Source: Macrostomum lignano (lineage: Eukaryota). From it: a stretch of 64,000 bases of DNA. The translations under genes were made by a program, and so were the position numbers. This document shows, in pieces, positions 8,256 through 64,000 of this stretch; positions within the stretch are counted from its first letter, which is position 1, and the number at the start of each line of letters is the position of its first letter. The notes below the pieces were generated by a model, which saw only the letters and a list, made by a program, of their open reading frames with translations, had not been told where the DNA came from and ran no database searches. The stretch spans positions 1,623-65,622 of the forward strand of contig NIVC01003501.1 of NCBI GenBank assembly GCA_002269645.1. The letters run 5' to 3'.

Positions 8256-9867
8256 GCCAGCCACCAAAGCGAAATGTCTTTGTCTTGAAAATGGAAACTC
8301 TTACGCAATTAATGCGAGTCAAATACTTCTGGTTGAATTCAAAAACCTTTTACCAGCGTATATAACCGTATTTCATTTTCTAAGAAAATGTTACCACCAA
8401 TGTTACCAAAATTTACCACCGCGGCAACGGCAAACCTCTGGAATTTGTGAATTCCAATTGAAAAATATTCCCCAGGGATCCATTTGAAATCTGCACAGCT
8501 CTGGGACTGCAAAATATTAATGGGTAGTGGGGGGGGGTAAATTTTGGGCTGGAAGTGGCTGCTGACGCTGCAACTTCTTAGCCCTTCGTGTTTTTCAATA
8601 GAAACAGCAAGTAAAAAGCAAACTGTGTCAGCAAGAAGGCAGATACAATCCCTGCAAGGCGCGCCTCTTCTGGCGCCAATCCCCCACCCTCTCTCAGACT
8701 CCATTCAGATTGGGGATGTGGGTAGGGTAGGGTGGGCGGCCTCTTCACCAGGAAGTTGGTGGCATTTCCTCCCCAGATTTGTTATAAATTGTCTCCTTCG
8801 CGCGGGAGGTGAAACACCCCCGGCTCCGCGGCTGCGGACAAGAAACACGCGAAGGATAAAAGACGTTTCTAATAGTAAAAGAGACTTATGCGGATAGGGA
8901 AAATGCAGACAAATTTGCCCCAAAAAACAGCAGCAAGAATCTGTGGAAATGCAATCGCTCGATTGGGGTGACCCGCAGCTTTTTGGACCCATAAATCACC
9001 AGACACCCGGTGGCTGCACTTAAGAGTTGGGTGGGGGGGGGGCAACTCCCAGAGACCTGATGAATTGATGGCACTGGCGAACTGATCCGCGCGTCTGCTC
9101 TCTCTCTCTCCGGTATTCCGCGCGCGTATTGGGTAAAATCGAGCCGGAATTTCCAGGAAACAACTGCCGCCTCCTCCGCCTCGATCGGTAAGTGTCTCCG
9201 CGTGAGAGCAACTTCAGCTGAACAAAATCAAGTTTGCCGTAGCTTTGGTGCTGCTTTTTTGTGAAAGAATCGCAGCAGCCCATTAAAATCCAGGCGTATC
9301 TGCCCGTGGCCTTTCCAGCCCCCCCCCCCCCAATTCGATAGCCTGTTTTGCTTCGCGGCTGAAATATTCTGCAGAAGAATCAAACATATAAGAAGTGAAA
9401 TCTGCTTCAACTGGTGGCGTCATTTTTCTGCTTCCCGTCTTCCTCGAATCGTGACAAAAAAGTGTTGCACGGATTTGATGCTTGGGGGAACTGCTGGGTT
9501 CATCCGGAACTCGATAAGGCCAAAGCGAGGCTGTGCGGTGCGACTGGCGAATGCATTATGATTATGACTCCTCCAACAGCAGACAAAGAGGAGGAAAGCA
9601 TGAAGACCAAAAAACCATATCATTTCTGTCAAAAAATTAACTGCCTTCCCTCATTTGCATCGATTTGCTAAGTTAACTACTGACAGTAATATGTGCGCAT
9701 AATTCTGCACTTCACTACTACTGCGAGCGTAGCAATACAAGTACGAGCGCGTATATGGAAATGGAATTACATTTTTAAATCACGTAATCTATCTAGTATT
9801 TATGTCTACAACCTTGTCTATATCTATATTTGTGTCCATATCTACAACTATATATCTATATCTATAT

Positions 9868-43947: not shown

Positions 43948-46109
<2,162 letters not shown>

Positions 46110-47050: not shown

Positions 47051-47346
47051 ACCATTATTAGTATTCTTGTAACTTTTCTTAGCACAAAAAGCAGAAAATA
47101 TTGATCATGACACTAAAAGTTTCAAATTGCAAAGATGTAGGCCGCACGCTACACTCTCTGCCTCACATTATTCATGACTCACCCTCTGGCCTAAACTTGT
47201 TTACCGATTCTCGATCAATCACACATCGCTTCACCCCCACCCCCGATATTGACTAATAAATATATTAAGCAAACAAAACCACACAGAGGCCACCCTTTTC
47301 GGCACGCAAACGTATAGACTTCACATTGGCATCGCAAGCAGTCAGA

Positions 47347-48132
47347 ATGTCTGTGCCTCTGCAGCTACCCCCGCATGAGCAGTTTAATGATCAAACAGAG
47401 CAACACAACCTCTCGGCAAAGTGGGAGGAGTGGTCCGGCCGTTTCAAAAGGTTTGTCGCAGCCAGTGGCATCACAAGTGCGGACCAGCAGCGCGAAATTC
47501 TTCTCTACGTAGGCGGCAAGCAGCTGGCGGACACATCCAAAGAGCTGAATCGACCTGGAAAGTCTCTTGACGATCTGATCGAGGCATTCAGGACTCACTA
47601 CAGCGACAGGCACAACCCTGTGTTTGTCAGGTACGAATTCCGGCATTGCATCAGCAAACTGGCGAGTCACTGGACGCCTGGACACAGCGCCTCTACGCAG
47701 CAGCCGAGGGCTGCGAGTTCGGGTCGCAGCACGACTTGCTCATCCGAGACCAAATAGTGGCCGGCTGCAGATCCGTTCAGCTCCGGCGGACACTCCTTCA
47801 AACTCGAAGCATCAGCCTCAAGGACGCACTGCAGCAAGCAATAGCCTTCGAGGCGGCGGAACTTCAGTCAGCAGCCATCGAAGCGCGGAACAACGAGACG
47901 ATAAACTCGATCCAGCGAAAACGCCACGGCCAGGAGTCCCGATCGGAAGCCAAATGCATTCGGTGCGGAGAGCTGGGCCACCGCACGTGCGAATTGGCAA
48001 GAGGGAAAACCTACCATAAATGCAACAAAATCGGACACCTGGCGAAGGCCTGCTTGTCCAGCCCCGGCGGATTCGATGAGAAAGTGCACGTGGTATCGGC
48101 CCAGGGGCGAACCGAGCCAGAGGACCTGGAGA
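47347..48132 (+). pseudogene. gag of the LTR element (1-nt frameshift at ~47646; cut by the LINE)
   Basis: Two overlapping ORFs join into a typical gag; knuckles CIRCGELGHRTC and YHKCNKIGHLAKAC. Confidence 0.85.
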
Positions 48133-48235
48133 CTTGACTTACTTGACTTAGCTGCAGGGCGGTCCGAAGACGCAGCGGGGAGGCGAGCGTCGCCCATTCC
48201 GCTAATTCCTGAAAGGCCCGCATAGACTAGGCCGG

Positions 48236-51200
48236 TCAGGGAGGTCTGCCGGTCCTGTCTGCAGCGATGTCTTCGGTGGGGAAGACGGAGGCTCGCTTGG
48301 TGGCCCGGAGGAACCGGATGAGCCGTGGGATGTTCTTGGGCCGGCAAACGTCGTCCAGGGACGGGTTGGGCCCGAGGTGGTTGAGCCGGTCTTGGTTGAA
48401 GGCCGGGCAGTAGCAGACGAAGTGCTTGGCGTCTTCGTTCTCGAGGTTGCAGAAGGGGCAGAGTTCGCTCCGGCGGGCACTTCGGAGGAAACAGTGCCTG
48501 GCAAAGCAACCGTGACCTGTGAAGGTCATTGTGAGAGCGCGGATATCTTTTCGATTTTGGTTCAAACGGATTCTCCGCGGCTTGAGGGACGGATTGGGCA
48601 CTGCCGCACGGGATTGGCGGCAGTTGGAGATACCATCCTATCTGCGCAAGTGCAGGATGTCCGCCCAGTCGTTAATCTGACGATTAATGACAGTGGCGGG
48701 GATGGGGGCCAGGGGCACGGGGCCAAGGAGCGAGCCGGAACAGCTCGCCTTAGCGAGGGAGTCGGCGAGCTCGTTACCTTTGAAGCCGGCGTGTCCTGGG
48801 ATCCACGTAAGCCGGACGGTGTTCCTCCGAGCCAGCTTGTTGAGCTGCCCGATACAGTCGCGGACTGTTCGGGAGTTCGTAGTGGTGTGACACAGGGCCT
48901 GCAAAGCGGCCTGGCTGTCAGAGTGGAAGAATATTCTTCTGTCCTTGAAGTCCCTGCAGTGGAGCTCAGCTGCACAGGAGCTGATGGCAAGGACTTCGTT
49001 CTGGAAGACGCTGGAGAGTCTACCAGTGTGTTGGGCGTAAGTGGCGATCACGCGGCCGTTGATAAAGATGCAGACTCCAAAGCCGGATAAACCGTCTTTG
49101 GAGGATCCGTCAGTAAAGCAGTGAACCTCCTGAGGGGCCCAGCTGTCGTTGGCGTTCTCCCTAGAGAGGATAGTGACCTTGAAGCGTTGGTAGAGATTGA
49201 GGGAGCGCGGCACAGCGTCCGAAAGGACAGCCGCACTCCCACTCTCCTCCAGAACTTTAAGGCACAGGTCAGAGTGCGGCAGAAGCTTGCGCTTCGCCAT
49301 CGCTCTTTGTGGCTTGAAGCTAACACCAGCCTCAATGAGCCGGCGGGTGGTTTTAGCAGCCTCGCGACGGACGAAGATGTCCAGGGGCGGGAGGCAGAGA
49401 AAGGCGTTGAGGCCGTCAAAGGGAGCTGAGAGTGGGGCATTCAGGATCATGCGGCACGCGCGTCCCTGCACCTTTTTGAGGGCTTTGTGGCAGGTTTTAA
49501 TATGCAAGGCGCTGGTCCAGACCAGTCCGGCGTAAGTGACGGCCGGCCGGACCATAGCGGTGTAGATCCACCAGAGCCGCTTCGGGGTGAGGCCCCAGGT
49601 GGTGCCGACGGCTCTGCGCAGCTGCGCAAGAATCGCGAGGGCTTTTTTGGTTTTGGCCTGAACGTGGGTGGACCAGCTCAGCCGGTGGTCCAGCGTAACG
49701 CAGACACTTGGTTTGCTTGCAGGATGGAATTTCCACCCCGTAAAGCTTTAGTGGGCGAATACGCCAGTTTACCCTGCTGGTGAACATGATCGCGACAGTT
49801 TTGGTCTCAGAGAGTCTGAGGCCGCACCTGTCCGCCCATTGTTCAGCAAAGCGAATAAAGTTTTGCAGAAGATCCCTAAGGGTTTCGGGTGACGGTCCGG
49901 ATGCCACGGCTGTGACATCATTGGCGTAACCGACCTTAAGGATGGGGTCAGGATGGCTGTCCTGGAGGAGCTCATCGACGACCATGTTCCAGAAAACTGG
50001 AGGAAGGACACTGCCCAGGAGGCTGCCTTTGCAGAGGGTTACCGTCCGTTGGTGGCCCAACAGGTGTGCGGTGGCAGTACGGTGGCTGATCATATACATG
50101 ATCCACCAGGTGAGGTGCGAGTGGGTTCCTCTAGCACGTAGAGCTCTGTCAAAAGCCTCAAAGAGGACATTATCGAAGGCTCCAACAATGTCGAGGAAGA
50201 CGGCAAGAGCGTAGCCAAGAACGGCTTTCTCCAGTATATCGACCAAGACGTGAAGCGCGCTCTCCGTGGACCTGCCTGCCCGAAAGGCGTGCTGGTTCTC
50301 ACTGAGCGGCTTGTTCTTCAGTTCCACAGAGAGGAGGCGCCAGAGCACCAGTCTCTCTAACAGTTTCACCAATGAGGAGGTCAGGCTAATTGGTCTGAAG
50401 GATTTAATGGACCGGTAGTCCGGTCGGCCGGGCTTGGGGATAAAAACCACCTTGGCCTCGGTCCAGGGTTTCGGAACAAAGCCGAGTACAATGCAAGCTT
50501 TCAAGAGCTGGCAAAGGTTCCGCAGGAAACCGGTGCATTTCACCGCCTCTCGCAGGAAAGCTTGCACAATTCCGTCCGGTCCTGGGGATTTGAAGGCTTT
50601 GAAGGAGGAGACTGCTTTAGTAACGCGGTCCTCCGTGATGATTGAGTCAGCCAGTACGTGTCCGCCCACTGAGTGATCAGGGGGGGGGGGTCGGGCCTGG
50701 CTGGCTCGTTCGGGAAAAACGCTGTTAGCATCGCTTCCAGTGTTTCTCCTGGGTTCTCAGTGAGCGAGCCGTCGACTATTTTGACTGAGGAGAGTTTGGA
50801 AATTTTGTCCAGGGTGAGGGCTTTAACAATTCTGGAGGTGGGGCGGGAGCCCTCAAGTTCCTCACAGTATTCGCGGCCACTTGTTGGTTTTGGCGTTCCT
50901 AACCTGCCTCTTGAACTCGTGGATAGAGTTCAGGTAGGCGGTTTGGTCGGCCGGGTTTTTAGTTTTTTGGGCTCTACGGTGAAGCCTTTTGGCTCTGCGA
51001 CGGAGGTCGCCAAGCTGCGGGTTCCACCATGGGGCCGACTGTTTGCCTTTATATGCCTTTAGTGGACATGAGGCTTCGAAGGCAGCAGTGAGCGAGTCCA
51101 TAATAAGTACGGCCGCAAATTCATCTGCTTCCTCGCAGGTGTTGATGGAGACTGGAGCGCTAGTGCAGCGATAGTTTTCCTCCAGGGAAAGCCTGAAGGT

Positions 51201-51941
51201 GGTCCAATCGGTATTCCTAGCATTCCGTTTCCAATAAAGCTGGCCTGCGTTACGGGCGCCGGCCAGCGTGAAAGAGATGAACTTGTGATCGGAGAGGGAC
51301 GCCTCAGGGAGCACCCGCCACTCCCTAGTGCTCTGGAAGAGCCTGGGCGTGGCGAGGGTGGCATCCAGCACCTCCGATCGGCGTCCGTTATTGAAGGTAG
51401 GGGTACTATCCGAGTTACAGAACTCAAGGGTTGTAGTAGCTATATAAGCCAGGAAGTCTTCACCTCTCTGGTTAATATCAGAACTGCCCCAGTGGGTATG
51501 GTGGGCGTTGATATCGCCTGCCACAAACAGCTCATATTTTCTGGTGGAGCAGAGCTCGACCAGTGTGACAAGCTCTCCTGGGATCATCTCGCCGTCGCCC
51601 GGTAGGTAAACCGAGGCGATGATGGCAGTCCTCCCAGGGAGTATGTCTTCGGATTGGATGACGCAGATGTCCCTGGTGGACAGGTCCGATCTGAGCCATG
51701 CGTTAATAGAACTGGACACCATGATGCAGGATCTTGGTGCCAGGTTTCCCTCCCGGGTGCCAGCGGTTAAACACTGGTAGCCGGTGGGGACATGTTGGGG
51801 GCTGCCCCTAAGCGTCCAAGGTTCCTGGATAAGGATAATCCCTGGAGCGTATTGGTCAGTGTGCCTCAAGAGGTTGACCGAAGCAGCAATGCTGTGCTGC
51901 AGGTTGACCTGCAAGCAGTGAATGCCCTGGGAGACAGTCAT
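48236..51941 (-). pseudogene. LINE ORF2: AP endonuclease, reverse transcriptase, RNase H, C-terminal zinc finger (several frameshifts)
   Basis: APE: LQVNLQH, IQEPW, GDINAHH..WG, LDATL, SDH. RT: FRPISLTS, QHAFRAGRSTE, FLDIVGAFD, YAND (YADD mutated). RNase H: FTDGS, SSVFQNEVLAI, HSDSQAAL, WIPGHAG..GNELAD. C-terminus: TGHG..CPFC...KHFVCYC. Confidence 0.93.
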
Positions 51942-51943
51942 AT

Positions 51944-53476
51944 CTACTGTCCAGGGGAGGAGAAAAGCAACTCATTCTCAGCCTCATCGGTGAGAATTGA
52001 GTCGCCAATTTCCATTGGCTCAGGCTCAGCCGCCTCCCTAGCCGCGGCGGAGGCGGACGTGGCGCCCACGGCAGGTGAGTCACCTAGCCGCGCTGCACCG
52101 CCCTCCTCCCCAGCGACTGGGGTACGGCTGCTGCCTTCGCCTTGCGCCCCGCCGTCGGGAGTCTGAGCTCGGCCGGCAGCGTTCTCCTGGTGGTAATCCC
52201 ACCAGTTGGATGGCTGAGCCGTGCCGTCGTCCAGTTCCTTCGGCTGGCTTTGAGTAGTTTTACGAGTGGCACGAGTCCGCTAAAGGTGAAGTCTCAGAGA
52301 CTGAGCTTCGTCGAGTGCGCGCTGGATTAGCCCGGACCGCCGGTTACTGCGGGCGGGTCTACGTCCGCGCGAGGCAGACTCAGCAGCGCGAATAGCCTTG
52401 TTAGGCTCGGGATCGGGTTGCTGCTGCCGCTTGGCCGGCGGAGCCTGAGCCCCAGCTCCGGGAGCGGCGCGCTTCCCGTTGTTCTTAGACTCCACCTTGC
52501 CCCCCTCGCAGCGGAGGATGGTCAGTTGGTGGAGACCAAGGTGGAGGTTTGAGCCATGCGGTAGCCGCTTGGCCCATCCCTCCGTCAGGCCGAAGATGAT
52601 GACAGTGGCCCCGGTCGTGCCCTTGCGGACCGTGTTGTGGTACACAAGACCACTGGCGTAAAGATCCGGGTGCCGCTTGAGCAGGAGCTGCCGCAGCTGC
52701 TCCCCGGACTTGATCGCACTGTCGGCCGGGACCCAAATCCGATGGCGGATGGTCTTCGGCCGCTCGCTCTCCAGGGCGAAGGTCAGCTGGCCCAGGTCGC
52801 TGTGCCAGTCGAACTTGGGCAGCTGATACCGCAGGAGCTGGGTGCTCTCCTCGGATTTGCACCACAGAAGGATGCACCCGTTCGCCTTGGTGGACTTGAC
52901 GATGTCCACAAAGACGCCCTCAAGGATTAGTTTGAGTAGGCCCTCGTCGATGGTACGCCACGCGACGTCGAGCTGCTCGGGCGTCAGGTCGAAATCCCCG
53001 CCGAGGATCATCACGGCGGGTTGCAGCGGCTGCTTGACCTTGGAGGCGTAGGAATCGGAGATCTTGAGCGGGGCCGCTTTGTCCTTGGAAGGCGGTAGGC
53101 CAGCAGGGTTGCCCCCCTGAGAATCCGAGGACACGGCGGTTCCTGACGGCCCAGCCGCGCCACCGGACTCCCCAGAGGGCTTCCCCACCGCGGTGGCTCC
53201 AGAAGGCCTCACCGCGGCTTGCCCGCCCTCCGCGGACGCAGCAGCAGCCCGCTTCTCCTGCCGCTTACGGTTGCGGCGGATGTTTCGCTGCCGTCGGGAC
53301 TCGGCCGTGCGCGGTCGGCTAGACTGGCGGCCAGGGTGCTCGGCAGCAGCGTCAGCTGGCCCGGTTGGACCAGGTTGGACGTTGGAGCTACCAGTGGTAG
53401 CTACCGGAGCGGCTGATCCCGGTGGGCCAGTGGCGACCGGGTCAGTTTCATTGGTAAAATTGGCGTTAGTGGCCAT
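51944..53476 (-). pseudogene. LINE ORF1 (~510 codons, one premature TAG at 52280-52282)
   Basis: The frame continues past the TAG to ...LLFSSPGQ*, ending 2 nt before the ORF2 ATG; central region resembles the DUF4780-type ORF1 of LOA/Lian elements (recalled). Confidence 0.8.
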
Positions 53477-53678
53477 AGCTGAAAAGCGGGGGAGGGCTAC
53501 TCGTTATGCGAGTTAAGTACCCGACTGGCCGACACCCCAAGCCAGCCGGTTTGAAAAAGGGACCGCTAGCGATCGGACTCCCCGGCCTTCCAGCCCATCG
53601 GCACGGTCAAACACCTTAGGCATTAGAGGGTACGTTAAGCAGCACCACGGCCTGCAGGCTGGTAAGCCAGACCCGCAT

Positions 53679-53981
53679 ACCCAAATTCGGCCGAAGCCAC
53701 CGGATGGGTCACCAGCGCCGGAGCCCAGTCTGTCCAGCAGCCCTAGGGTCTGCCTTGAACACACGCGGGGACGAGTACCCCTGGGTCGACTTGCGAGACA
53801 GCGTGGGGGGATCTGCGGCTGCCAGAGGCAAATAGCGGGTCCAGACCTCCCACCAGCCTTGACCTGCTAAAGATAGGGCAGGCGTAAAGCGTCGCAGACC
53901 AGCGTCGCAGCGTCACAGACTTAGCCCATAGGCCTAGTCTGTCCCATACTTCACTGGCATGCTGAATACGCCTTCGCATGC
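53679..53981 (-). ncRNA. HDV-like self-cleaving ribozyme at the LINE 5' end
   Basis: P1 GCATGCG(53981-75)/CGCGTGT(53767-61); P2 ACCCAG(53786-81)/TTGGGT(53684-79); P3 GGG/CCC; L3 TACTCGT; P1.1 AC/GT(53760-59); J4/2 CGAAT with C at 53689. Confidence 0.8.
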
Positions 53982-54560
53982 GAGGACCTGGAGAGCAGTT
54001 GCGAGGTTTTCTGTCTCGAATCCCGACGGAATCGCCTGCCGCGCGTCAGGGCGGCCATCAGGAGCCGCAAAGCCGACCTTCTGATCGACAGCGGCGCGGG
54101 CTGCAACCTGATGAGCCTGAAGACCTTCTGGTCCATCGGAGGCAGGGCAAAGGATCTCCAGGCATACAAGCGTCGAGTGCACCCGTTCGGTTCCACGAAA
54201 CCGCTGGCCACGCTCGGGATGGCCAGGCTTCGGACCGCCGTTTACAACATCAGCGCCAGCATCAAGTTCATCATCGTGAGGGAAGCGGCAACGACGATCA
54301 TCGGGAGGGAGACGAGCGAAGAGCTGGGCATCCTGCGCATCTGGCCTCCGTCACGCAGCTCCTGCTTTCAGGGACACCAACGGCGAGCGCCAAGCCCCAT
54401 GAGCTCAACGAGAGACCTACGACTATCTGATGGTCGGACAACGCAGCAGCGGGACCGGCAGGACTGGAGCGGAGCACGGGTGAATCGGGCTGACAACTCT
54501 GGCCTCACAGGGGCGCCGCGGAGCAACATCAGACTGAGTGGCCAGGGCAAATACAAGTAA
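53982..54560 (+). pseudogene. retropepsin protease portion of the LTR element gag-PR ORF
   Basis: LPRVRAAI..KADLLIDSGAGCNLMS...IIGRETSEELGIL; ends at TAA 54560. Confidence 0.85.
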
Positions 54561-59071: not shown

Positions 59072-62050
59072 TCAGTCCTCAGCTTCCCCAGCATCCGCTG
59101 TTTCCTCCGCTTCTTCCGCCGCCTGAGGCTTCGTATCCGCCTCGGAAATTTCATCTTCACAGACAGTCCGCCTTCGCTGCAGCATCCGCCGCTTCCGCTG
59201 CAGCTGGCGGGTCAGCTCGTCTCCCGCTGCTTGCGGCTGGCTGGCCTTCCGCTGCCTCTTCACTGAGCCGGAGTTTGGCGGAGTCGAACCCAGCTGCGGC
59301 TGCGCCAGAGCAAAGCAGGCCAGCGCATTCTCTTCGTCATCCTCATCTTCGCAGCCGTAGCGCCGTCTCAGGTAGACTTCCCACAGACGGGCGACAATCT
59401 CCGTGCAGATAACGTCGCCGGAGTTGAGTGCAATCATCTTCAGCAGAAAGGTGCCGTCGTGCCGGAGAAAGTCTCTGATGAAGCGGCTGATGTCGCGCTT
59501 GTCAACTGCGGGCGATCGGTCGGCCAGTTTAAGGTAGCTGCGCACGAACTGGGATCGCTTGCGGAACAGCAGGATGCGGGCGACCCAAACTGGCAGGCTT
59601 AGCGCAGTTAGCGAGGCCGTAGTGATCACCCAGAACCACAGGAAGATGTAGATCTTCTCGTTGATCATGTTGATGGGCAGGGTGCACTGGGAGTAGACGT
59701 AGTTGCCGCCAGCCGGTGCTCTGTAGAACACCGCGCACACGCCGACGCGAGGGAAAATCATCGTCTGAGTCCAGTCACGGCCGTGGCGCAGGTTCTGCAG
59801 TACAGCGGCGCCGAATGCGAAATAGCTGGCGTTGAAACCCAGGAAAGAGTGCATCAAGTAGAGCTGGCCCACCGCGTTTCCAATGTAGCACATTTTGATG
59901 ATAAAGTAAGTGAAAATCAACCAGTTACCAAGCCGTTGCGATGGCAACAGTCGGCGGAAACTGCCACGTAAGCGCTCTGTGGTTGTCAATTTCTGAAAGG
60001 AATATAGGGTAAGAGAAGACCTGGACAACATCTTGAAATATCCTAAAAAAGCTCCCTGAAGGAAATATAAGGGGATAGGAAGGTACCTCGGGTGCCTTTC
60101 ATACTGAGAAATTTCACGCTTAAATTTGTTGCGCGTTCGCGTACATTCGTGTATTTTTTTTTTTTAGAGGCAGGGGGGTTGTGTGCACCCTGGCGCATTT
60201 TAAGCGACATAGGCACACAACCGGCGAGAGGCATTACTGCCCATTCCGCCGACTCCCCTGAGCAGGCACACAAGCGCGCGATACGTACGCAGGCACACAC
60301 TCACACAGGAGTGTACAGCGGCCCTAACTTTTTTTTTATATTATCATTAGGCATGTACACTTCACTGCGCCTTGGGGGGTTGGCTGTCAAGGCCGTTAAT
60401 TGCACGAGCAGAGCCAAGCCGAGATTCCAATTCAGCCCCAAATTAATGTGGCTGCACTTGGAATCGAGCCTGGGTCGCTGGCACACCAGAGCAGCTGCGC
60501 TACCGCTGGGCTACAGCCCCCCCGTACATTCGTGTAGTGGGTGAAGACATTCGTGTAGTGGGTGAAGACATTCGTGTAGTGGGTGAAGACATTCGTGTAG
60601 TGGGTGAAGACATTCGTGTAGTGGGTGAAGACATTCATGTAGTGGGTGAAGACATTCGTGTAGTGGGTGAAGACATTCGTGTAGTGGGTGAAGACATTCG
60701 TGTAGTGGGTGAAGACATTCGTGTAGTGGGTGAAGACATTCGTGTAGTGGGTGAAGACATTCGTGTAGTGGGTGAAGACATTCGTGTAGTGGGTGAAGAC
60801 ATTCATGTAGTGGGTGAAGACATTCGTGTAGTGGGTGAAGACATTCGTGTAGTGGGTGAAGACATTCGTGTAGTGGGTGAAGTGTAATTTCAGGCGAAGC
60901 ACTCTTTCTATTTGCTTTGTGTAGCTTAACTTTCTATCCAAGGATGATTGATTTTTTATCTTCGGTAAGTCAAACTAGGCAATTAAAAAGTCGCAAAATA
61001 TTAATTTATATTTGATCTATCATTTATTATCCATGATAACAAAAGATTGCCTCACCCCATGTGGTCCACTACTGCAACGGTGCTTCTTGTTGTGCTGAAA
61101 AAGCAACTGCTCCAGCCTTCTACAGACGTGCTGCACCAGCTTTGCATGCTTCTCGCCATCGGCAGTCACAGCGTCGTTAGCCGTCCGAATAATGTGACCG
61201 ATGTCCGTGCCCGCCCTGTTGTAGCTCATCATGCCCCAGAGTACTCTGGGCAGGTAGAACATCAGCGACTGCAGGCCCAGCACGAATGGCACCCACTGGT
61301 AGTAGACAATGCGGCGGTCTCTGTACACCCCGATCGGGTCCGGCTGGCTGTTGTCGATATGAAACTCGGCGATGGGGACGGCGAACGTTCCTTGGGTAGC
61401 GGCGGGTGAACAAGAAGGGGGGGGCATCAGCGACTGTGGCTTACGCAAAAAAAGTTTATCAATATACTCGTATTTTGCGTGTACATGTACCTATTTTAAG
61501 TCAAACGATGCCCAATAGGTCCAATTTTGGTGATTTTAGTTCGGCTGATGATAATTGACGTTTTGTGTACCATTACCAATGTAACATGGGCAAAATTGGC
61601 GTATCTTTTAAGGAATATGTTGTAGATCAGGTTCCCTAATATGTAGCTAATGTATTGCAATAAAAATTTGGACGTGTCCAGTATGTTTTTTAGGTCACGT
61701 GGACATCCCTGCGACCTAGAAAAATACAAGCAATTGCTTCCGCACTGTCAGCGGTCGCTGCTCAGACAGTTTCAAAAACAAACAAATGCCAGACGTTCCC
61801 AAATCAACTCACCTTCCGTCCAGCAATAATTGTTAACGTACTGTTCTTGACCGCTGTGGGCTCCAACCTCGTTCGGTATGTAGCAGGCTACAGGCGACAG
61901 CACGTAGGTCTTTAGTGTCACCGTGGTGCAGCAGACCAGCAGCAGAATGACGGTCACTTCAAAGTTGAGCCGATCGGAGAAGTCTTCCACCCCGGCGTAG
62001 GTGACCTGCTGCAGTTTGTTGAACTTGTCGAATATCTCGGCTGCAGCCAT
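59072..62050 (-). CDS. innexin (gap junction protein), ~497 aa, 3 exons
   Basis: Exons 61813-62050, 61056-61390, 59072-59992. Motifs EDFSDRLN, C..P, NNYCW, YYQWVPFVLGLQ, FPRV..C, CTLPINMINEKIYIFLWFW, FLRHDG.FLL. Confidence 0.96.
60154..60523 (-). mobile_element. SINE family A, copy 3 (full length, tRNA-Ala-like head), in innexin intron 2
   Basis: Head GGGGGGCTGTAGCCCAGCGGTAG..GGCTCGATTCC, poly-A tail, 13-bp TSD GTACATTCGTGTA at 60141-60153 and 60524-60536. Confidence 0.93.
60526..60882. repeat. 21 bp minisatellite (ACATTCGTGTAGTGGGTGAAG)
   Basis: About 17 near-perfect copies. Confidence 0.97.
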
Positions 62051-63159
62051 GCTGCACGAACTCCGAGCATGCGTCTGGGGAAAATGCTCTCCTCTCTGTC
62101 TGTGTGCGCCTTCCTCTTTCCTTTCGCCTTGAACCCAGCTTATAGCTAGTATTGATACAACGGCTTGGGAAGTCCACCCGAAGCAATTCCTTTCCTTCCC
62201 CAGAAACTCCCGTCGCGTTTTGCTCGTTTGCTGCTCCGTGCAACGGTCGCTGGCGTGGGGAAGAGATCAGGCGCAGAGATACACGCCCTTCCCAGCTGAT
62301 GATCCCATTCTGGGACTATTTCTGGACGTACTTGCTTACCCCCCGCATGTTTGTCAGCGAGTTCGCACTGCGGTGGCCCAGCGTACATCGATTGACGCTC
62401 GCCGGTTCTGAGAGAGATTGGATGGAGTTGATGGAGACAAAGGCCGGAGGACGCGGTTCTCAGACCTTACCAATGGTCATTCTGCCATAGACGCCAAACG
62501 AACAGACATACTCGCTCGTAGATCAGCAGATATTGGCAGAAAAAAAGAATTTAAGACGGCCCTATTGTGTTCGGGTGCATGTAAAATTCATTCGGTGGTA
62601 AAGTTAGTAAAGTTAGTAAAGCTGGCTGCACCCAATTATGTGGACATTTTCATTCCTAGCAAATTGTTCAATTTATGTCTGGGAGCGACCTTTAGGAAAA
62701 ATATCGATAGCAGCAGTAAAGAGTAAACTACCAACCAACCAACTAATACAATACCGCTTTGAACTGGATATGAGCCAGCATGGACACAGAATGGATTAAC
62801 CATTTTACACTCTCTTCTTTGCCAGGCAAACAAATTCTTTTCATTGACAGGGACCATGGGAGAGACAAAGTAAACATGCATTCACATAGATACTCGTCAC
62901 CCAATGAAGGTATCCCATGCTACAAGAGGATTATAGCAGAAAGTTCATTCGGTTGGAAATAAATTATGTGACATGCTTTTAATAAATGTTAAATATCGGC
63001 ATTAAAAGTACACAAACACAAATGTATTTACATACATTCCTCTTTTGCTTAGCTTTGTCTTTGTCGTACAAGCTGTACTTTTTTTTCTACTACGTGATAG
63101 CAAGCATGCCCAGTGGCTTTTTGGAACGTTTTAAAAGCATTTGGGAATTGAGTAAGACA

Positions 63160-63951
<792 letters not shown>

Positions 63952-64000
63952 TTACATGCAAATTATCACATCTCAGGCCCCTGATAAAGTCACGACAAGA

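Follow-up and report, generated by a model that had tools for sequence, protein, structure and literature searches.

A candidate HDV-like ribozyme at the 5' end of an APE- and RNase H-bearing LINE in Macrostomum lignano

The stretch of Macrostomum lignano DNA analyzed here (the window) comprises 64,000 nucleotides of contig NIVC01003501.1 (GCA_002269645.1) and carries on its minus strand a LINE of 5,849 bp, extending from 53981 to 48133 (Table 1). The element has a separate ORF1 and an ORF2 in which the Pfam domains Exo_endo_phos_2, RVT_1, and RNase_H follow one another, giving the order APE, RT, RNase H. ORF1 contained no domain in the Pfam search and had no homolog in a search of 5.8 billion proteins. 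Frame arithmetic from the ORF coordinates implies that ORF2 is broken by a minimum of two in-frame stops and one frameshift; therefore, this copy of the LINE is not young, and as an old copy it may have lost the ability to cleave. The label "LOA/Lian-like" that was applied to the element in the initial annotation is compatible with its APE, RT, and RNase H architecture, an arrangement that also occurs in other RNase-H-bearing LINE clades, such as I, Tad, and Ingi, and is not diagnostic of LOA. For the endonuclease, the best match had 52% identity and came from a 1.5-kb contig; for the RT, identity reached 43% at most, and the best matches were unnamed or generic. Where relatives of the element's proteins were named, they came from a beetle, a leafhopper, a moth, and a spider, with insects nearest for the RT and a spider nearest for the endonuclease. 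Self-BLAST revealed no other copies of the LINE in the window. An innexin gene also lies in the window; it is encoded on the minus strand, its exons falling near 62050-61772, 61433-61020, and 60031-59072. Such a gene could occur in any invertebrate, and neither it nor the arthropod relatives named above lends support to the flatworm attribution made in the initial annotation.

The boundaries of the insertion are well defined. A 13-bp TSD, which reads GAGGACCTGGAGA on the plus strand, is present at 48120-48132 and 53982-53994, the two copies being identical at 13 of 13 positions. When the flanks were joined with a single copy of the TSD, an uninterrupted ORF was obtained that runs from a gag zinc knuckle into the DSGA motif of an aspartic protease and includes ...PEDLESSCEVF...LLIDSGAGCNLM.... 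Because the empty site restores this gag-to-protease ORF, we conclude that the LINE was inserted in the antisense orientation within an LTR-retrotransposon-like sequence. Since the bases adjoining the TSD are not the same on its two sides, the LINE begins unambiguously with G53981, an assignment that is based on the TSD and the empty site and is independent of any RNA folding. The initial annotation had noted that the predicted ribozyme cleavage site coincides with the TSD boundary, and this coincidence was borne out: in this one copy, the TSD and the restored ORF of the empty site place the 5' end of a full-length insertion at the predicted site.

Table 1. Positions in the window of the LINE, its flanking duplication, and the elements of the candidate ribozyme
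Feature	Position	Strand	Details
TSD copy, 5' side of LINE	53982..53994	minus	TCTCCAGGTCCTC as minus-strand reading
P1, 5' strand	53975..53981	minus	GCAUGCG; predicted cleavage 5' of G53981, the first base of the LINE
J1/2	53787..53974	minus	188 nt; two hairpin domains predicted
Competing long-range helix, 3' strand	53789..53804	minus	pairs with nt 1-14 (53981-53968)
P2, 5' strand	53781..53786	minus	ACCCAG
P3 around L3	53768..53780	minus	GGG/CCC
L3	53777-53771	minus	UACUCGU, 7 nt; fits U-N-C-N-C-G-U
P1, 3' strand	53761..53767	minus	CGCGUGU; partner of 53981-53975
P1.1, 3' strand	53759..53760	minus	GU; partners are the C and A in L3 (C-G and A-U)
P4 region, model A	53690..53758	minus	69 nt; irregular hairpin with about 10 unpaired nt before it
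J4/2, model A	53685..53689	minus	CGAAU; candidate catalytic C53689
P2, 3' strand, model A	53679..53684	minus	UUGGGU; P2, -6.8 kcal/mol
P2 extension, candidate	53672..53677 with 53797-53792	minus	UGCGGG with CUCGCA; 6 bp, -6.9 kcal/mol; putative
3' half, model B	53724..53754	minus	found by the relaxed anchored descriptor
P4 hairpin, model B	53754-53736	minus	19 nt, -8.4 kcal/mol
J4/2, model B	53732-53729 (CAGA)	minus	GGA then CAGA; candidate catalytic C53732
P2, model B	53728-53724 with 53785-53781	minus	CUGGG with CCCAG; -6.7 kcal/mol
LINE ORF1	52280..53476	minus	398 aa; AUG at element nt 506
LINE ORF2, four pieces	48236..51941	minus	from ORF list and Pfam
APE endonuclease piece of ORF2	51941-50862	minus	Pfam Exo_endo_phos_2
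RT piece of ORF2	50669-49497	minus	Pfam RVT_1
RNase H piece of ORF2	49555-48638	minus	Pfam RNase_H
C-terminal Cys/His motif of ORF2	48601-48236	minus	
LINE 3' tail	48133..48150	minus	(TAAGTCAAG)x2
TSD copy, 3' side of LINE	48120..48132	minus	13/13 identical to 53982-53994

Read from G53981 to 53679 on the minus strand, the element's 5' end can be drawn in the nested double-pseudoknot order of an HDV ribozyme, namely, P1, J1/2, P2, P3, L3, P3', P1', P1.1, P4, J4/2, and P2' (model A), and our own descriptor also recovered an HDV-like core at this end. P1 in the HDV-like family is about 6 to 7 bp long and canonically opens with a G.U wobble. In the candidate, P1 consists of 7 bp with two wobbles, G1.U (U221) and U4.G, and has a duplex energy of -8.6 kcal/mol. 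J1/2 folded alone gave -75.0 kcal/mol and two predicted domains, one at nt 9-102 and the other at about nt 115-190, and GGCGU (nt 10-14) could pair with ACGCU (nt 178-182) to form a helix that closes the whole of J1/2 next to P1. A 3-bp P3 encloses an L3 that supplies both the P1.1 pairs and the U...C...G positions conserved in the family. The helices can all be placed in the correct order, as was claimed in the initial annotation, and its description of P1 (GCATGCG with CGCGTGT, including G1-U and the U-G at position 4), of the 188-nt J1/2, P2, P3, and L3, and of a 2-bp P1.1 containing an A-U pair (A-C of L3 with G-U at 53760-53759) was accurate in both coordinates and pairings. The P4 of approximately 70 nt was reproduced in part: a 69-nt region is in place and folds alone at -23.9 kcal/mol; however, it is not a clean helix, since 10 nt are left unpaired after P1.1 and the 58-nt hairpin that follows is closed by only 2 bp. 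The proposed catalytic cytosine does lie at 53689, in a J4/2 that reads CGAA plus an extra U and is, as had been noted, 1 nt longer than the usual C-N-R-A pattern.

The folding energies give a mixed picture. P2 and P3 were present in the minimum-free-energy fold without being forced, and forcing P1 and P3 carried a penalty of 6.6 kcal/mol, a value that excludes any credit for P2. The overall folding energy was not better than that of shuffled sequences (z = -0.6), and the thermodynamic z-scores (-0.6 and -0.3) were uninformative. The minimum-free-energy fold contains a competing helix in which nt 178-193 are the partner of nt 1-14 (-12.9 kcal/mol, versus -8.6 kcal/mol for P1). This helix may represent a folding trap, or the inner part of it (nt 10-14 with nt 178-182) may close J1/2 beside P1 in the active fold. 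A hairpin across nt 1-25, also anticipated in the initial annotation, was present and likewise competes with P1. In addition, the base at position -1 of this copy of the LINE, a C, could lengthen P1 onto G222 and disturb P1.1, an effect comparable to one reported in L1Tc and R2.

To score the motif against chance, we used a descriptor that specified a 6-bp P2, a 3-bp P3, an L3 of the form U.C..G., a 7-nt P1', P1.1, C-N-R-A with an optional base, and P2', and that was compiled from reviews, from drz-Agam-2-1, and from general features of the HDV-like family. Without anchoring, two cores were found in the window, compared with 0.79 expected from block-wise dinucleotide shuffles, and with the strict descriptor full motifs occurred in the shuffles at a rate of 0.47 per 128,000 positions, or approximately 4e-6 per position. 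Since the unanchored count is no rarer than chance, the motif alone proves nothing. A different result was obtained when nt 1-7 were held fixed and the following 693 nt were dinucleotide shuffled (n = 20,000): a motif anchored at nt 1 arose in 0 of 20,000 shuffles with the strict descriptor, in 3 with the relaxed descriptor, and in 60 with the loose descriptor. The strict descriptor was set after the candidate was known, and the relaxed rate, about 1.5e-4, is therefore the fairer figure; the loose rate is 3e-3. The significance of the motif comes solely from its anchoring at the TSD-defined end, where it is very unlikely to have arisen by chance. The initial annotation's statement that the coincidence of the cleavage site with the TSD boundary is unlikely by chance agrees with the anchored result.

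Two other pairings or matches in the window were considered and set aside. The 3' strand of P1 has a second 7-bp partner at 54046, 65 nt upstream, but this partner lies in the flank and begins with A rather than G. The second descriptor match, at 61443-61554 on the plus strand, has the same L3 but is antisense within an innexin intron; its helices are AT rich and weak, it is not followed by a LINE, it has no similarity to the LINE and no Rfam match at E<=10, and we judged it to be probably a chance occurrence.

Database searches lent the candidate no assistance. None of the Rfam HDV-family models (HDV_ribozyme, CPEB3, drz-agam, and related models) matched anywhere in the window at the gathering score, and the HDV covariance-model search that had been put forward in the initial annotation as a check came back negative even at E<=10, both over 451 nt and over the 126-nt core. 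Ribozyme families of all kinds were in fact absent from the Rfam results for the window, the 451-nt region, the 126-nt core, and the second candidate. The HDV models of Rfam are narrow in sequence and assume a short J1/2, so this outcome constitutes mild negative evidence, but it is still a failed test. Comparative searches were similarly unproductive. ORF1 was absent from the seven loci that bear relatives of the LINE (L001-L004 and L007-L009), in which the relaxed descriptor found cores at a density near one per 9 kb on each strand, equivalent to background. None of the other relatives fetched, the Macrosteles LINE being described below, had a convincing core upstream of its endonuclease region. 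A scan of metagenome contigs with a 19-mer core yielded two matches, both in high-GC actinobacterial sequences and attributed to chance, and a pattern with 21 specified bases in which P1' was left free had zero matches in genome or viral contigs.

HDV-like ribozymes are known to cleave the 5' ends of R4, Dong, baggins, L1Tc, RTE, and Drosophila R2, and it has been proposed that they free promoterless elements from cotranscripts (PMC3774820, PMC6765202). The precedents that the initial annotation had invoked in R2, RTE, L1Tc, and LOA-type elements are thus published, baggins being of the LOA type. The candidate resembles the ribozymes of all six elements in lying at the start of the element, with cleavage 5' of P1 nt 1, predicted in the case of the candidate, corresponding to the 5' end; it shares with L1Tc, in addition, the presence of APE, RT, and RNase H and a TSD of about 12 to 13 bp. 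The likeness to R4, Dong, baggins, L1Tc, and RTE is one of description, and the candidate differs from them in being a predicted ribozyme and in having an ORF1 without detectable relatives. The differences from R2 are greater: R2 inserts site specifically in 28S rRNA genes, has a single ORF and a restriction-like endonuclease, and uses 28S sequence for part of P1, whereas the candidate LINE has an APE endonuclease and sits in an LTR retrotransposon. In most R2 elements, moreover, the cut falls in 28S sequence, upstream of the junction; for the candidate it is predicted at the junction itself.

Neither the length of J1/2 nor the A-U pair of P1.1, which had appeared unusual in the initial annotation, can be regarded as such, since both have already been published, as has the baggins ribozyme. 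In R2, P1 and P1' are separated by 23 to over 700 nt; the J1/2 loops of silkmoth R2 are 216 to 498 nt in length and the P1-P1' distance in honeybee R2 exceeds 700 nt, so the candidate resembles these elements in having a very long J1/2. Structured J1/2 domains accelerate cleavage in that they pinch P1 and P2 toward each other. In R2 ribozymes, P4 varies or is missing, and some of them can dispense with it; conservation is confined to the catalytic C and a few bases of the core. Similarly, U:A and noncanonical P1.1 pairs occur in fast ribozymes that have been crystallized (PMC13635239). The Caenorhabditis briggsae and Ackermannviridae members of the HDV family, with crystal structures from 2026, combine a U:A pair with a noncanonical pair in P1.1 and cleave rapidly; like the candidate, they lack two G:C pairs at this position, and because U:A occurs in P1.1 of these fast ribozymes the A-U pair of the candidate falls inside the known range. 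They differ from it in being compact, with a short J1/2, and are reportedly sensitive to the integrity of J1/2.

A close parallel is drz-Agam-2-1, a fast ribozyme from Anopheles gambiae whose sequence and structure are given in the supplement of PMC4908430. Both have a 7-bp P1, a structured insert in J1/2 (P1.2 in drz-Agam-2-1), a 3-bp P3, a 7-nt L3 of the form U-N-C-N-C-G-U, a 2-bp P1.1, and, if the candidate is drawn as model A, N-C-N-A-A in J4/2 and a long P4. Compared position by position, P3 is ACG/CGU in drz-Agam-2-1 and GGG/CCC in the candidate; L3 is UCCACGU versus UACUCGU, with agreement at 5 of 7 positions; the 3' strand of P1.1 is GG versus GU; the bases after P1.1 are UAA versus UCAA; and J4/2 is GCUAA versus CCGAA plus one U. 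The only difference in L3 that touches P1.1, a change from C to A, is compensated by a change from G to U in its partner, so that P1.1 comprises two C-G pairs in drz-Agam-2-1 but a C-G and an A-U pair in the candidate. The two differ further in that the J1/2 of drz-Agam-2-1 is about 45 nt long with one domain, whereas that of the candidate is 188 nt long with two hairpin domains; in P2, which is continuous over approximately 12 bp in drz-Agam-2-1 but consists in the candidate of 6 bp and a possible further 6 bp beyond a 5x1 internal loop; and in the extra U of the candidate J4/2. The Rfam drz-agam models remained unmatched.

Based on the anchored shuffles, the boundary defined by the TSD and the empty site, and a core pattern that matches drz-Agam-2-1, an HDV-like ribozyme is the best-supported reading of these data, and we estimate a probability of roughly 0.7 that the 5' end of the LINE carries a genuine ribozyme of this kind, or its decaying remnant in an old copy, which, by cleaving itself off a longer transcript, defines the end of the element. 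The initial claim of an HDV-like ribozyme at the exact 5' end is therefore supported in part, by its location and its pattern, and it is weakened by the Rfam result, by the failure of the searches to find a second copy or close relative, by the atypical P4 and J4/2, and by a second way of drawing the 3' half (model B). The analysis shows that the helices can be placed, that the boundary is exact, and that the anchored motif is very unlikely by chance; the occurrence of cleavage, the identity of the catalytic C (C53689 in model A or C53732 in model B), and any role of J1/2 are inferred. In this scheme, the ribozyme would be encoded in the first 260 to 310 nt, approximately, of the LINE RNA, and the LINE would be transcribed inside a longer host or read-through transcript. 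In the folded RNA, P1 would stack on P1.1 and P4, and P2 on P3; the J4/2 cytosine together with a bound Mg2+ would then cut the backbone immediately 5' of G1, so that the released element RNA would begin at its own first base and carry a 5'-OH there. This RNA could be copied to its end by target-primed reverse transcription, and new insertions would begin at G1, directly beside the TSD, as the present copy does. The 188-nt J1/2 would form a peripheral domain with a structure of its own, like those of the R2 and drz-Agam-2 ribozymes, possibly serving also in the translation of uncapped RNA or in protein binding. The seven upstream AUGs that precede the ORF1 start fit non-scanning initiation on an uncapped RNA, although they constitute weak evidence.

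An unlikely alternative is that the resemblance is fortuitous, that is, that a GC-rich and structured 5' UTR mimics the motif, that the 5' end reflects the start site of an internal promoter or happenstance, and that no cleavage takes place. Such an origin would account for the chance frequency of the unanchored motif and the recurrence of the same L3 in an unrelated intron, for the second partner of the P1 3' strand at 54046, for the lack of an Rfam match and the nonsignificant fold z-scores, and for the absence of the motif from the relatives examined; the loose anchored rate and the many degrees of freedom available in the initial annotation are also in its favor. It is difficult to reconcile, however, with the outcome of the strict and relaxed anchored tests, with an anchor position that was set independently of the fold, and with a core that matches a validated ribozyme position by position, the compensated P1.1 pair included. 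It can also be envisioned that the 5' UTR holds a functional structure of a different kind, IRES-like or protein binding and built around the long-range pairing of nt 1-14 with nt 178-193, to which the HDV-like pairings are incidental. This possibility we consider highly improbable. The helix is part of the minimum-free-energy fold and more stable than P1, the upstream AUGs suggest non-scanning initiation, and the 5' RNA of R2 reportedly binds the R2 protein and behaves in an IRES-like manner; nevertheless, such a structure would leave unexplained the canonical order and register of P3, L3, P1', P1.1, and J4/2, and the two roles are in any case compatible, since the same RNA performs both in R2 and L1Tc.

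Model B retains the ribozyme but gives it a compact 3' half that ends at element nt 258, in which case C53689 would not be catalytic. It was recovered by the relaxed anchored descriptor, and it has several attractive properties: a P2 of five Watson-Crick pairs with a favorable energy, a P4 that is a clean hairpin and begins 4 nt after P1.1, following UCAA, and a C-A-G-A that directly adjoins P2 with zero spare bases. These are offset by the three additional unpaired bases (GGA) between P4 and the catalytic C, which result in a 7-nt J4/2, and by a short, 5-bp P2 without a possible extension, since ribozymes with a large J1/2 reportedly need an extended P2. Model A suits such a ribozyme because its P2 can be extended by CUCGCA/UGCGGG; moreover, its CCGAA is closer to the GCUAA of drz-Agam-2-1, and the minimum-free-energy fold takes the P2 of model A. 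We lean toward model A and regard model B, which can be placed equally well, as the less likely of the two.

A more elaborate possibility, to which we assign a low likelihood, joins several of these elements: the LINE, belonging to a LINE lineage from a poorly sampled invertebrate, would carry an active and distinct sub-type of HDV-like ribozyme in which J1/2 acts as a switch or platform and as the translation entry for ORF1. As part of this same improbable scheme, nt 1-14 might pair with nt 178-193 in an off state or form P1 and the closing helix in an on state, nt 185-190 might pair with either the 5' end or the P2 extension, and J1/2 might double as the entry site for translation of the relative-less ORF1.

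With regard to significance, R2, RTE, baggins, L1Tc, and drz-Agam-2 already provide documented cases of the mechanism, of a long J1/2, and of a weak P1.1, and no new question is opened; the candidate is probably a further example of the known LINE 5' ribozymes. If it is active, it would explain how this LINE family can obtain a precise 5' end with no need of a promoter of its own, and the retrotransposons that bear HDV-like ribozymes would then include an element of the APE/RNase-H type whose J1/2 is very large. Such a ribozyme would be of use in transposable-element annotation, as a marker of full-length 5' ends, and it would provide another natural test case for the tuning of HDV-like ribozymes by peripheral J1/2 domains.

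A possible counterpart was considered in the Macrosteles LINE (L003), which has the TSD AAGCAATGAGAA and a 5' end at 8388. It was rejected because it has no anchored HDV motif, P2 and J4/2 being absent, with P1, P3, L3, and P1.1 drawable at that end. This LINE is intact and is the best defined of the distant relatives.

The HDV-like descriptor, a search pattern covering P2, P3, L3, P1', P1.1, J4/2 and P2', matched the window at a second place, a compact core of 112 nt with a J1/2 of 6 nt (see the table). This match lies in an AT-rich innexin intron, antisense to the gene, and no LINE follows downstream; comparison with the window's LINE revealed no similarity, and an Rfam search of the match returned no HDV family. 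Chance alone would yield approximately 0.8 such cores per window, and we regard the identity of its L3 with that of the main candidate, the putative ribozyme that starts at the first base of the LINE, as a minor coincidence for which we have no explanation.

Coordinates of the descriptor matches, genes, repeats and retroelement features (each part of the second match is listed under the coordinates of the whole match)
Feature	Location (strand)	Details	Basis
Second match, P1	61443-61554 (+)	ACGCAAA/TTTGCGT	descriptor
Second match, P2	61443-61554 (+)	TTATCA/TGATAA	descriptor
Second match, P3	61443-61554 (+)	ATA/TAT	descriptor
Second match, L3	61443-61554 (+)	TACTCGT, same as main candidate's L3	descriptor
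Second match, P1.1 and J4/2	61443-61554 (+)	GT; CTGA	descriptor
L002 core	L002 1894-2020 (+)	L3 TACTCGA, P1.1 GT	relaxed descriptor
Macrosteles LINE	L003 8376-13105	related, apparently intact	
LINE leader	53476-53981 (-)	7 upstream AUGs	
LINE ORF1	52280-53476 (-)	398 aa	
LINE ORF2	48236-51941 (-)	broken	ORF coordinates
ORF2 stop, EN to RT	50864-50862		
ORF2 frameshift, RT to RNase H	near 49500-49555	implied	frame change
ORF2 stop, RNase H to C-terminal motif	48640-48638		
gag-pol sequence	47326-48132 and 53995 to ~54560 (+)	host of the LINE	
Innexin gene	59072-62050 (-)	at least 3 exons	Pfam Innexin, E = 1e-46, 3e-16, 1e-14
Long simple/tandem repeats	45051-46109, 60432-60941, 62986-63984		

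The relaxed descriptor, a looser form of the same pattern, identified a further core at L002, a fetched locus carrying distant relatives of the LINE. The L3 of this core is nearly identical to that in the window, and its contig also holds two related LINEs; no recognisable LINE 5' end was found at the core, which probably represents background. The named relatives of the LINE proteins are arthropod. The innexin gene marks the host as an invertebrate animal, and in combination with these arthropod names it lends no support to a flatworm attribution. A related LINE from Macrosteles quadrilineatus (GCA_028750875.1) encodes an ORF1 of 300 aa and an ORF2 of 1022 aa, has a (GATAA)n tail and the TSD AAGCAATGAGAA, and carries a GC-rich 5' UTR of ~437 nt that begins with GGGGGCG. 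When an HDV-like fold was sought from its first base, P1, P3, L3 (UGCAAGG) and P1.1 could be drawn; neither P2 nor J4/2 could be placed.

In the window's LINE, the N-terminal half of ORF1 is of low complexity. No Pfam domain was found in ORF1. A search of 5.8 billion proteins with a cutoff of E ≤ 1e-3 returned no homolog, and the fetched loci carrying LINE relatives contain none either; this ORF1 looks like an orphan type. Numbered from the first base of the element, the ORF1 AUG is at nt 506, 3' of all the upstream AUGs (nt 3, 22, 35, 53, 304, 359 and 384). Such a leader would be awkward for cap-dependent scanning and would fit ribozyme- or IRES-type initiation. The ORF2 of this copy is broken: EN and RT share a frame and are separated by at least one stop, RT and RNase H lie in different frames, which implies a frameshift between them, and a further stop separates RNase H from the C-terminal motif in the same frame.

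The LINE is nested, in antisense orientation, within LTR-retrotransposon-like gag-pol sequence, with the CCHC zinc knuckle encoded on one side of it and the protease DSGA motif on the other; removal of the LINE together with one TSD copy reopens the reading frame. The window also contains three long repeats: one translates to ~200 consecutive Tyr codons, another has a 21-nt unit with the translation THYTNVF, and another consists of microsatellites rich in GA and AC.
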